Shown: positions 33,615-52,548 of the stretch, piece by piece
How the letters are laid out: each line of letters starts with the position of its first letter
Numbering within the stretch: the first letter of the stretch is position 1
From: Mobula hypostoma
Lineage: Eukaryota
Assembly: GCF_963921235.1 (NCBI RefSeq)
Contig: NC_086123.1
Coordinates: 3,844,001-3,908,000 of the forward strand
Direction of reading: 5' to 3'
DNA length: 64,000 nucleotides
Translations under genes and position numbers: made by a program
Notes under the pieces: generated by a model
The model's input: only the letters and a program-made list of their open reading frames with translations
Databases searched by the model: none
What the model was told of the DNA's origin: nothing

Positions 33615-33733
33615 CTATTTGCATCGAGATTGACTGATGCCTTTATTCTCAATGTTGTATTTTGCTTTCGAGAAGCAGATGGCCGCCTTTCGATCACATT
33701 CACAGATAAACTTCGCGCAGTGATAATTACCAC
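33615..33733 (-). CDS. PLA2G1B: PLA2 copy B exon 4
   Basis: 119 nt; [41 protein letters not shown]. Confidence 0.9.
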
Positions 33734-36700
33734 CTGAAAGGAAGCATATTCAAAATAATCCATTATATTAATGATATAGTATTTGCCTTGGATTATGAAA
33801 GAATGAAAGATAATTTTATATTTTAATATATTTTGATAATTCAGCTTACATCTATATAGTATGTGCAACATTCTAATCATTATATAAATGTTCTGTAAAC
33901 AGTTTAAAATACTAATTGTAATTTGGGTTTTTAATTTCATTGTGATGATCTCATCATTTCTAGAGTCAATAGATCCTTTTAAACTGATGTCAGACATGCA
34001 TTGACATCAGAATAACACTTTCAAATCCCTTACTCACTCTTCCTTCAGTTAGTCCTGACGAAGGGTCTCGGCCTGAAACGTCGACTGCACCTCTTCCTAG
34101 AGATGCTGCCTGGCCTGCTGCGTTCACCAGCAACTTTTACGTGTGTTGCTTGAATTTCCAGCATCTGCAGAATTCCTGTTGTTTAAATTTTTCATCTGTC
34201 TGGTGAGGAGATTGTACGTAACAAAAGAGCTTGGGAGAAACCTCTTTTAATGTGATCAGAATTGTCCTGCAAATATCAGCTTAGATATTTTATCTGGTAA
34301 CATACATCAAAGTTGCTGGTGAACGCAGCAGGCCAAGCAGCATCTATAGGAAGAGGCGCAGTCGACGTTTCAGGCCGAGACCCTTCGTCAGAACTAACTG
34401 AAGGAAGAGTAAGTAAGGGATATTTTATCTGGTCATGGCTCCATTGGGATCTTGCTGCAAACAAACTAGTCACAGCATTTTTAATGCATTCTGTAAAATG
34501 CTGAGGTAAAGTGAAGCAAAAATATTCCTCCTTTTATTCATCTGAATCCATTTTCTGTGGGTGAATTTTGAAACCACAGCAGGGATCACAGGACAGATAT
34601 GGAGAGGGTGTTTCCTGTACTGATGGGAAATAGAATCAGGGGTCACTGGCGCAGATTAAGGGCAAACCATTGCGGGTTCAAACTGGGGGAAGATCCTGTG
34701 CCAGAGGGCTGTGGATGCCATGAATTCACTCAAAACTGAAGCTGATTAAATTTGATAAATTGGAGGAATCTGGGAATATTGAAATAAGTCAGGAAAAATT
34801 GTTGAACAAGAAGATAAACCTATATCTTGACAAATAGTGCAGCAGGCTTTCAGAGCCAAATATTTACTCAATCTACTATTTCAAATGATTTTTGATGGTG
34901 TCAGTGCTACCAGACGGTACTTACTCATCAATAATGCTCAGTTCATAACTTGCTCTCTGCATATGATCCAGCAATATCTGGGCCCTGACCACTAGCTGGT
35001 GAGTAACATTGACAACACACACGTGTCAGACAATAACCATCTTCAAATAAGGAGTGTAATTCAGCCATCTTTCACGTTCATAGAGTCGTAAAGGTTTTGC
35101 AGCTCTGAGTCAGGCTCTTCGGCCCAACTCATCCATGCTGACCCACTGTCTTTCTATGCTATCCCATCTGCCTGCACGTGGCCCAGATCCCTCTGAAGCT
35201 TTCCAACTATCTTTGAAATATTGTAATTGCTCCCATCTCCTTTGCACCTTCTACATACCCAGCAGCCTCTGGGTGAACAAGTTGTTCCTTTTAAAACTTT
35301 TTCTACTCCCACATTAAACCTAGACCTCTAGTTTTAGACTTTCCTGCCTTGGAAAACGGCTGTGATTTTTTATTTTATCTATGCCTCTCATTATTCTATA
35401 AACCTCCGTAAGGACACTCCTCAGTCTGTGGGACTATGTCAAAGGCCTTGCTAAATTTCATGGACATTCCTTCCTTTCAATCATCAACATAATCACTCCA
35501 AAAATTCCATCACAACACAATTTCACAAGTAGAAAACTATGCAAACTATCCCTCATCAGTTTTCCAGATCAAAGGCTGGTATATGCTGCCTCTTGAAATT
35601 TCCTCTGGGACCTTTCCATCCACTGATCTTCAGTCATTACCATCTCTTTGGCCCCAACATCACCGTTCTGGAATCATAATGTCACAACCGGGGCTCGTTT
35701 AAATTTTTTTTCAGTTAGTATGTGGGTTGTTTTTTCTCAGGTATTCAGACTTCCTTGGATTGCTTACCCTTTATGTCCCATAAGCAAGGAGTTGTCCAGT
35801 ATTAAGGACCCTCACCACCCAGTACATGCCCTCTTCTCATTGTTACCGTCAGGAAGGAGGTACAGAAGCTTGAAGGCACACACGTCAAGACCAGCTTCTT
35901 TCTCTCTGCCACCTGATTTCTAAATGGACATTAAACTTATGAACACTACCCCATTACTTTTTTATTTCCTTTTTTTGTACTATGTATTTAATTTAACTAT
36001 TTAATAAACATATATGTAATTACTGCCATTCAGTTTATTTCTGTATCTATCAGGAGTGGAGAGAATGGGCAATTTCAAGTTCCTGGGTGTCAATATCTCT
36101 GAGGACTTAACCAGGTCACTACATATTGATGCAGCTACAGAGAACATAGAAACATAGAAACTCTACAACACAATACAGGCCCTCTGTCCATAAAGCTGTG
36201 CCAAACATGTCCTTAACTTAGAAATTACCAAGGGTTACCCGTAGCCCTCTATTTTTCTAAGCTCCATGTATCTATCCAGGAGTCTCTTAAAAGACCCTAT
36301 CGTATCCGCCTCCACCACCGTCGCCAGCAGCCCATTCCACGCACTCACCACTCTCTGCGTAAAAAACTTACCCCTGACATCTCCTCTGTACCTACTTCCA
36401 AGCACCTTAAAACTGTGCCTTCTCATGCTAACTATTTCAGCCCTGGCAAAAAGCCTCTGACTATAACACGATCAATGCCTCTCATCATCTTTTACACCTC
36501 TATCAGGTCACCTCTCATCCTCCGTCTCTCCAAGGAAAAAAGGCCGAGGTCACTCAACCTATTCTCATAAGGCATGCTCCCCAATCCAGGCAACATCCTT
36601 GTAAATCTCCTCTGCACCCTTTCTATGGTTTCCACATTCTTCCTATAGTGAGGTGACCAGAACTGAGCACAGTACTCCAAGTGGGGTCTGACCATGGTCC

Positions 36701-52400: not shown

Positions 52401-52548
52401 TAGATTATTTTGAATATGTTTCCTTTCAGGTGGTAATGGTCACTGCGCGAAGTTTATCTGTGAATGTGATCGAAATGCGGCCATCTGCTTCTCGAAAGCA
52501 AAATACAACCCTGAGAATAAAGGCATCAGTCAATCTCGCTGCAAATAG
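46375..52548 (+). CDS. PLA2G1B: Group I secretory phospholipase A2, copy A, intact 4-exon gene: join(46375..46408,46505..46664,47902..48026,52430..52548), 145 aa
   Basis: Manual splicing with GT-AG introns gives 438 nt with no internal stop: [22 protein letters not shown]|[123 protein letters not shown]. It has a signal peptide, an Arg-ended propeptide, the Ca2+ loop YGCYCGxGG, catalytic H48/D49/Y52/D99 and 14 Cys including the group I C11-C77 pair. The symbol denotes the family; one-to-one orthology is not established. Confidence 0.95.
46505..46664 (+). CDS. PLA2G1B: PLA2 copy A exon 2 (propeptide, N-terminal helix, Ca2+-binding loop)
   Basis: Polypyrimidine tract plus TAG acceptor at 46502-46504; encodes ...[16 protein letters not shown]...[18 protein letters not shown]; donor CG|GTAGGT. 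Confidence 0.95.
47902..48026 (+). CDS. PLA2G1B: PLA2 copy A exon 3 (catalytic CCxxHDxCY, pancreatic-type loop, beta-wing)
   Basis: TTTTACAG acceptor; [41 protein letters not shown]; donor A|GTGAGT. Confidence 0.95.
49090..51307 (+). mobile_element. Young 5'-truncated CR1 inserted in intron 3 of copy A
   Basis: ORF2 49102-51243 is broken only by one TAA (49942-49944, in the NYRP motif); KFADD; TTCTATG tail; empty site in B at about 34915-34930. Confidence 0.95.
52430..52548 (+). CDS. PLA2G1B: PLA2 copy A exon 4 (ICECD motif, C-terminus)
   Basis: TTCCTTTCAG acceptor; [38 protein letters not shown] then TAG at 52546-52548. Confidence 0.95.

Follow-up and report, generated by a model that had tools for sequence, protein, structure and literature searches.

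Mosaic ancestry probably underlies the exon-confined divergence between duplicated pancreatic-type phospholipase A2 genes of the ray Mobula hypostoma

Two neighbouring phospholipase A2 (PLA2) genes of the devil ray Mobula hypostoma, here called A and B, raise the question of how one short coding segment can come to differ far more than the introns around it. The genes lie in a 64,000-nucleotide stretch of contig NC_086123.1 (positions 3,844,001 to 3,908,000, assembly GCF_963921235.1), hereafter the window, in which positions 33615-52548 run from the stop codon of A to the stop codon of B. The original prediction for this span described an adaptively diversifying, toxin-style cluster and a candidate venom or spine-secretion locus. 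We propose that the difference, which is concentrated in exon 3, is probably in the main inherited from old lineages that gene conversion or recombination has shuffled within a mosaic family, and that a few lineage-specific replacements were added.

Gene models were built from six-frame translation, alignment and inspection of splice sites (Table 1). A and B stand head to head with about 6 kb between them, and share equal exon sizes (34, 160, 125 and 119 nt), equal phases and GT-AG boundaries at every intron; intron 3 measures 4917 nt in A and 4403 nt in B. The product of each gene begins with a signal peptide and a short propeptide, the last residue of which is Arg, and its mature part of 123 residues contains 14 cysteines. 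Both match Pfam PF00068 at E ~1e-34 (116.8 bits for A and 120.3 bits for B, against a curated cut-off of 32.1), and their best matches among solved structures are porcine and bovine pancreatic pro-PLA2 (PDB 1hn4, 2bp2/4bp2; E 6e-46 to 4e-45), to which the alignment extends through the propeptide, with Arg immediately preceding the mature N-terminus. The catalytic His/Asp pair, the Ca loop Y-G-C-Y-C-G-x-G-G and a conserved Tyr and Asp form invariant columns in alignments of 24 and 33 sequences that include bovine PLA2, A and B. Both columns of the group I Cys11/Cys77 pair (C33 and C98 in B numbering) are likewise invariant, as residues rather than as an observed disulfide. The loop region of A and B is one residue shorter than in the bovine, shark and chimaera enzymes and the rays' canonical gene, and thus shows neither the full five-residue IB loop nor its full loss.

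The B protein is 100% identical to M. hypostoma XP_062890318.1, which bears out the supposition that the host is a ray. Judged by these features, A and B are duplicated group-I, pancreatic-type (group IB-like) secreted PLA2 genes in which, as had been noted, all cysteines and catalytic residues are fixed. Their products would be secreted as zymogens of Ca2+-dependent PLA2 that become active once cut behind the propeptide Arg. An AlphaFold model of B from a 21-sequence alignment had a mean predicted local distance difference test score of 35 and was unusable.

The two genes belong to inverted arms that differ by ~3-4% over ~13 kb aligned, and it is against this background that their exons must be read. 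In a MAFFT alignment, A and B differ at 0/96 sites in intron 1, 28/1237 (2.3%) in intron 2, 8/160 in exon 2, 23/125 (18.4%) in exon 3 and 6/119 in exon 4, with 21 codons replaced and 3 changed purely silently, which reproduces exactly every hand count (introns, exons and codons) of the original prediction. Non-coding sequence differs at 106 of 3479 aligned sites (3.05%). Exon 3 exceeds this background (p=3e-11), whereas neither exon 2 (p=0.16) nor exon 4 (p=0.27) does; the claim that exons diverge faster than introns therefore stands for exon 3 and falls for the other two. The accompanying caveat that exon 3 alone clearly exceeds the background was sound, as the intron adjoining exon 4 differs at 18 of 279 sites (6.5%). 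Across the arms, non-coding windows of 300 nt diverge by 1-6%, except for one microsatellite-rich window. All 23 exon-3 differences fall within 97 nt, codons 75-107 in B; the first 28 nt of the exon are the same in A and B, and its active-site part is identical. This variable region is the site at which bovine PLA2 carries its one extra residue in the alignment; in PLA2 structures it would correspond to the pancreatic loop and the beta-wing together with the end of helix 2.

An excess of 21 replacements over 3 silent changes had been taken as Ka>Ks. The raw count misleads, because ~79% of sites are nonsynonymous and many of the replaced codons have changed more than once. Pairwise ratios of nonsynonymous to synonymous divergence (dN/dS) are 1.16 (NG86), 1.33 (LWL85), 1.23 (YN00) and 1.45 (maximum likelihood), and the nonsynonymous excess is not significant (p=0.84, Fisher test). 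Between A and B, dN/dS is not significantly above 1, which, as far as one pair of genes can stand for the family, is the outcome that the original prediction had said would speak against an adaptively diversifying cluster. Within exon 3 the proportion of silent sites that differ (pS) is 0.23, or 0.28 in the variable part, and that of nonsynonymous sites (pN) is 0.17, or 0.22, giving a ratio of 0.72-0.78. Silent divergence here is thus itself raised, at 0.23-0.28 vs 0.03 in non-coding sequence (p=4e-4). When as few silent steps as possible are assumed for the exon (3), their number is still above expectation at a background of 3.05% (p=0.018), with p=0.10 at 6.1%. The silent divergence of the island (~0.28) equals the non-coding distance to an old lone PLA2 copy in the window, remnant C (24-30%), as would be expected of a segment taken from an old paralogue. 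The changes are also clustered: 12 codons carry at least two changes where 3.1 are expected (P<5e-5), 14 adjacent pairs are changed where 3.3 are expected, and extra silent-type changes occur in 6/21 replaced codons vs 3/122 unchanged ones (p=3e-4). We rejected a general bias towards multi-nucleotide mutation as a sufficient cause, since non-coding sequence has just 4 adjacent pairs among 99 mismatches.

The other PLA2 genes of Mobula and its relatives indicate where the two versions of exon 3 may have come from. A and B share 29/42 exon-3 residues. B agrees with the M. birostris gene P0151 at 37/42, and with the stingray genes P0005 at 33/41 and P0155 at 32/42; A agrees with P0151 at 31/42 and with a different M. 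birostris gene, P0007, at 35/41. In exon 4 (37/38) and in the first part of exon 2 (20/22), too, P0151 matches B. These matches make B a coherent 'type B' gene, whose orthologues over exons 2a, 3 and 4 are M. birostris XP_072103728.1 and genes of stingrays. A is itself of type B in exon 4 and, sharing 21/22 residues with P0151, in the first part of exon 2. At the 13 exon-3 residues that distinguish A from B, the B state is found in P0151 at 8, the A state in P0007 at 8, and both at 5; because these five sites carry both states in two separate M. birostris genes, the states predate the species split. A triplet test with P0007 counts 8 exon-3 sites at which A and P0007 agree and differ from B, vs 2 at which A and B agree and differ from P0007, and the corresponding figures for exons 2 and 4 together are 0 vs 15 (exon-3 conflict, p=0.001). 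The original prediction had named a match between one copy's exon 3 and an older paralogue as a sign of conversion rather than selection. As far as the present data reach, A shows such a match, to an older lineage of paralogues, while exon 3 of B matches its cross-species orthologue.

Trees of separate segments disagree in the same sense. In exon 2, A, B and the M. hypostoma genes P0003 and P0006 form a group with 91-98% bootstrap, the genes clustering by species, and the same group receives 0% in exon 3. These four genes have in common a derived stretch of exon 2 that is absent from M. birostris, and exon 2 is, as the trees read, under concerted evolution within M. hypostoma. In exon 3, by contrast, A+B receives 0%, {P0003, Mbir_8, Mbir_153} 96% and {P0006, P0152} 90%, and these orthologue clades get 0% in exon 2. 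P0006 and P0007 both adjoin a sugar-transporter gene and are therefore positional orthologues. P0152, a second A-like gene of M. hypostoma, has the first exon and propeptide of an A-like gene, an exon 3 that resembles P0006 (38/41) and the very exon 4 of P0003 (38/38); by its segments it is plainly mosaic. The exon-2 grouping and the composition of P0152 give independent support for conversion in the PLA2 cluster.

We propose the following course of events. An inverted segmental duplication would have copied a type-B gene, the arms of which are now 3-4% apart. The variable part of exon 3 in copy A may then have been replaced by sequence of the older type 6/7 lineage, through non-allelic conversion or recombination among clustered paralogues. 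The same process would have made part of exon 2 uniform among the M. hypostoma genes, yet different types of exon 3 persisted across species, and selection probably keeps the exon-3 versions different. A minority of the differences would be lineage-specific replacements, such as the ~5 that separate B from its orthologue. The conflict between segment trees and the sharing of states across species are observed directly; conversion is the mechanism that we infer from them.

Several observations weigh against this proposal. Two exon-3 clades, the B-type clade (63%) and the A/6/7 clade (56%), have modest bootstrap support, from an alignment of 43 columns. Among the annotated genes of M. hypostoma none is near-identical to A in exon 3 (the best are P0152 at 33/42 and P0006 at 32/41), and no recent donor was found. 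The island ends exactly at the exon-intron boundary, with flanking introns only 2-6% diverged, and so needs either a tract of ~100 nt or selection that trimmed the tracts. At hypervariable sites, some of the sharing between genes could be parallel change. Silent changes in unchanged exon-3 codons are few, 1/27 where ~3.6 would be expected of an old segment (P ~0.13), a count that is compatible with an old origin and no proof of it. Finally, conversion is read here from the paralogues' proteins and the nucleotides of A and B. Conversion from remnant C was considered separately and rejected, as sites at which A or B agrees with C are balanced and scattered outside one A-only repeat patch.

The family to which these genes belong has expanded among the batoids. 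According to protein searches and cluster look-ups, M. hypostoma has seven annotated PLA2 genes (A, B, P0152, P0003, P0006, P0017 and the canonical P0037) and M. birostris at least four besides one canonical gene, while Hypanus sabinus, Hemitrygon akajei, Pristis pectinata and three skates have several apiece. Two types can be told apart in the alignment: a canonical one with the full loop, and a second that is one residue shorter in the loop. The canonical type is the sole type among the four shark and chimaera sequences aligned, with one gene each, and every ray whose genes were aligned has a canonical gene as well (P0037, P0106, P0090). The loop-shortened type, to which A and B belong, is seen in batoids only within the aligned set; it is present in 5 copies in Amblyraja, 3 in Leucoraja, 2 in Rhinoraja and 2 in the sawfish, and is also multi-copy in stingrays and Mobula. 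In the searchable literature we found no description of this expansion or of Mobula PLA2 genes. Two irregularities were seen within the family. In P0017 (XP_062890393.1) a Tyr replaces one of the 14 conserved cysteines, which would leave one disulfide unpaired. The Hypanus sabinus entries P0002 and P0159 are 223-residue RefSeq models that join exons of two adjacent PLA2 genes, so that a second domain comes after an incomplete first one; read-through or an erroneous join is the probable cause.

When paralogues are compared within each of seven batoid species, conservation is always lowest in the variable half of exon 3 (identity 0.58-0.68, vs 0.68-0.95 for exons 2 and 4). This suits the account advanced in the original prediction, in which positive selection after a recent duplication drove point replacements in the exons, above all in exon 3, while introns drifted neutrally. 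In snake PLA2 genes Ka and Ks both exceed intron divergence with Ka/Ks near 1, a precedent that also favours it, as do the 6-8x higher divergence of exon 3 over ~3.5 kb of non-coding sequence, a pN of 0.089 that exceeds non-coding divergence (p=1.5e-6) and the 5 replacements in exon 3, vs 1 in exon 4, between B and its M. birostris orthologue. In toxin coding regions, nonsynonymous changes commonly exceed synonymous ones (PMC2711939). The data on A and B depart from this account in their dN/dS, which at 1.0-1.45 is not significantly above 1 overall and is 0.72 in exon 3, and in the raised silent divergence of the exon. Moreover, of the 13 exon-3 differences at least 5 are common to two different genes of another species, which speaks against an origin in place after the duplication, A and B are never sisters in exon-3 bootstraps, and the replaced codons would need a rate ~20x neutral. 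We therefore regard adaptive acceleration by point replacement as an unlikely main cause of the island.

The state of gene A bears on another alternative, that A is a dead, decaying duplicate truncated at its 5' end, in which the excess differences accumulated by neutral drift. The homology between the arms starts inside exon 1, leaving A without B's start codon and 5' flank. Translated in frame, the sequence upstream of B agrees with the N-terminal extensions seen in models from M. birostris and Pristis, and the 5' flank of B is therefore ancestral; it has no counterpart beside A (46159-46374). The RefSeq model of A begins instead in a distant exon inside an unrelated open reading frame (ORF; Table 1), and the junction that it implies has no AG acceptor in the window. 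A's three unique residues lie at positions conserved in 13-22 of 22 relatives. A may thus be under relaxed constraint, or it may be running from a new promoter. The same 15 start residues open P0152, which lies elsewhere in the genome and is intact. Decay, however, predicts equal divergence in exon and intron (~3%), not the 18-24% observed. The frame of A and all 14 of its cysteines are intact. Remnant C, which is truly dead, shows an exon 4 that is 28% diverged, about the same as its flanks (24-30%), and non-coding changes in the A and B lineages are balanced when C serves as outgroup. Given the equal exon and flank divergence of C and the equal non-coding rates of A and B, neutral decay cannot explain the island, and we hold relaxed constraint to be a very improbable explanation for it.

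A last alternative concerns function. A toxin locus of venom or sting secretion, recruited from the pancreatic enzyme, would suit a myliobatiform host and the names, taken from elapid toxins, that RefSeq gives to several paralogues by similarity. M. hypostoma is a filter feeder and is not known to have a functional tail sting, both of which count against such a role. The loop-shortened subfamily is multi-copy in skates and the sawfish, which have no sting, and its expansion is thus not tied to venomous lineages, while all four shark and chimaera sequences aligned are of canonical type. The propeptide ends in Arg, and the closest structures are pancreatic pro-PLA2. Stingray venom-tissue transcriptomes do contain D49 PLA2 transcripts (PMC8781517), a point in favour, but PLA2 activity in stingray venom is minimal (PMC8781517) and PLA2 is absent from the transcripts of P. 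motoro venom tissue (PMC6315956). Because stingless batoids are multi-copy, the propeptide is of pancreatic type and the literature on stingray venom points the same way, a sting-venom role appears highly unlikely, which weakens that part of the original prediction considerably; a digestive or mucosal role may be more likely.

The window contains no N and is rich in repeats. Self-comparison pairs 32125-40299 with 54057-46378 in inverted orientation, in five collinear blocks of 94-97% identity (Table 1). An assembly or haplotype artefact was judged unlikely, given the 3-4% difference between the arms, their kilobase-scale insertions and the RefSeq models for both genes. Remnant C is a direct copy of the 51348-52998 region; its exon-4 homologue has one internal stop and has lost the terminal stop, and its exons 1-3 were not found in the window. 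Searches of the 64 kb by tblastn and sensitive blastn found no further PLA2 exons, and Rfam and tRNA scans gave no matches.

Table 1. Features of the window discussed in the text. Positions count from the first nucleotide of the window; aa, amino acids; LINE, long interspersed nuclear element.
Feature	Position	Strand	Remarks
Gene A, PLA2 group-I-like, RefSeq XP_062890223.1 (P0004)	33615-40302	-	Splice sites, joined-exon translation, PF00068
Gene A, exon 1 remainder	40302-40269	-	
Gene A, exon 2	40172-40013	-	
Gene A, exon 3	38775-38651	-	
Gene A, exon 4	33733-33615	-	
Gene B, 145-aa prepro-PLA2, RefSeq XP_062890318.1 (P0001)	46375-52548	+	Splice sites, PF00068, 100% identity
Gene B, exon 1	46375-46408	+	
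Gene B, exon 2	46505-46664	+	
Gene B, exon 3	47902-48026	+	
Gene B, exon 4	52430-52548	+	
Exon-3 divergence island, B	47930-48026	+	Codons 75-107; all 23 differences in these 97 nt
Exon-3 divergence island, A	38651-38747	-	Protein nearest type 6/7 lineage (M. birostris P0007 35/41, whole exon)
Upstream exon used as RefSeq start of A	42350-42394	-	15 codons, GT donor, 2 kb upstream
227-aa ORF containing RefSeq start exon of A	42053-42736	-	No Pfam match
Arm A: gene A and 3' flank	32125-40299		A-only insertions 36216-38547 and 35398-35733; A-only repeat patch ~34017-34420
Arm B: gene B and 3' flank	46378-54057		Interrupted by B-only LINE fragment 49090-51307 in intron 3
Inter-arm spacer	40300-46377		40300-43141 repeat-rich; 43142-46158 segment X; 46159-46374 B's own 5' flank
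Segment X', inverted copy of X, 3' of gene B	57801-61072		96% and 90% identity in two pieces
Remnant C: old lone copy of intron 3 end, exon 4 (~26336-26454) and 3' flank	25275-26929	+	72.6% identical to B

Segments X (43142-46158) and X' (61072-57801) bracket gene B, with arm A lying outside X; these interleaving inverted repeats are not explained by one simple inverted duplication. At their inner ends X and X' carry GT-rich microsatellite tracts (~46073-46241 and 57627-57897), which cause the sole non-coding window with 13% mismatch. Just past X', 61097-63916 (+) holds a 939-residue ORF with a reverse-transcriptase match (E 2e-44) and weak endonuclease/exonuclease/phosphatase matches, a LINE-type ORF2. 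A LINE fragment also lies between the 3' flank of B and X' (54058-57800), with GDSL-esterase, endonuclease and reverse-transcriptase pieces in separate ORFs; together with the B-only insertion in intron 3 (49090-51307), which carries a reverse-transcriptase ORF, it explains much of the difference in arm length. An interspersed repeat of ~100-170 bp occurs in at least five copies of 92-99% identity (1026-1171, 21735-21905, 34017-34189, 34299-34421 and 58594-58837), without a tRNA or Rfam match; one inverted pair of it in intron 3 of A replaces sequence common to B and remnant C. Another inverted repeat pair, of ~1.3-1.5 kb with 86-88% identity (6862-8360 vs 19949-18398), is unrelated to the PLA2 genes. 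A 237-residue ORF at 11245-11958 (-) matches Pfam ALKBH8_N (E 3.5e-10) and is presumably associated with a retrotransposon rather than a host gene.

If our proposal holds, this locus is a cautionary case, in which exons that outpace introns and a raw count of 21:3 resemble positive selection and arise largely from mosaic ancestry, a known confounder of dN/dS tests in converting gene families. Independently of that proposal, annotated proteins document an expansion of the loop-shortened group-I PLA2 subfamily across batoids, with seven PLA2 genes in M. hypostoma vs one canonical gene in each shark or chimaera sampled. A more far-reaching reading, which we advance only tentatively, is that these genes form a batoid-specific branch of pancreatic-type PLA2 whose exon-3 surface-loop cassettes are kept diverse by selection and shuffled by conversion, in the manner of toxin or immune genes in a non-venom setting. 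Such cassettes might reflect, for example, a digestive or antimicrobial arms race in gut or skin, and could be the genomic stock behind the PLA2 transcripts of stingray venom tissue. Were selection on them shown, the family would make a useful non-venom comparator for the diversification of PLA2 toxin families.

Among known systems, pancreatic PLA2 (PLA2G1B) is like A and B in PF00068, the His/Asp pair, the Ca loop, the 14 cysteines including the group-I pair, the Arg-ended propeptide and the four coding exons; it differs in a pancreatic loop one residue longer (bovine) and in being a single gene, where batoids have many copies. In the primate L/M opsin genes, conversion homogenises introns while the tuning exons stay different. 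The PLA2 cluster resembles them in that non-coding sequence and some exons are homogenised, one important exon is diverged, and exon and intron trees disagree. It differs in belonging to another protein family and in having several exon-3 types among at least five paralogues, with the selection that would maintain the island presumed rather than observed. The purified 14-kDa, trypsin-activated PLA2 of Dasyatis pastinaca pancreas is, like the predicted A and B proteins, a batoid secreted enzyme of pancreatic type, the 21-residue N-terminus of which seems by eye, without alignment, nearer to the canonical than to the A/B type (PMC3050761). [quoted passage not shown] The authors of that model held that PLA2s evolve mostly by point mutation and left the mechanism open (PMC2711939). 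Unlike in the snake toxins, dN/dS between A and B is not above 1, and the divergent segments have recognisable counterparts in other lineages of paralogues and in cross-species orthologues, which favours conversion or recombination as their source.

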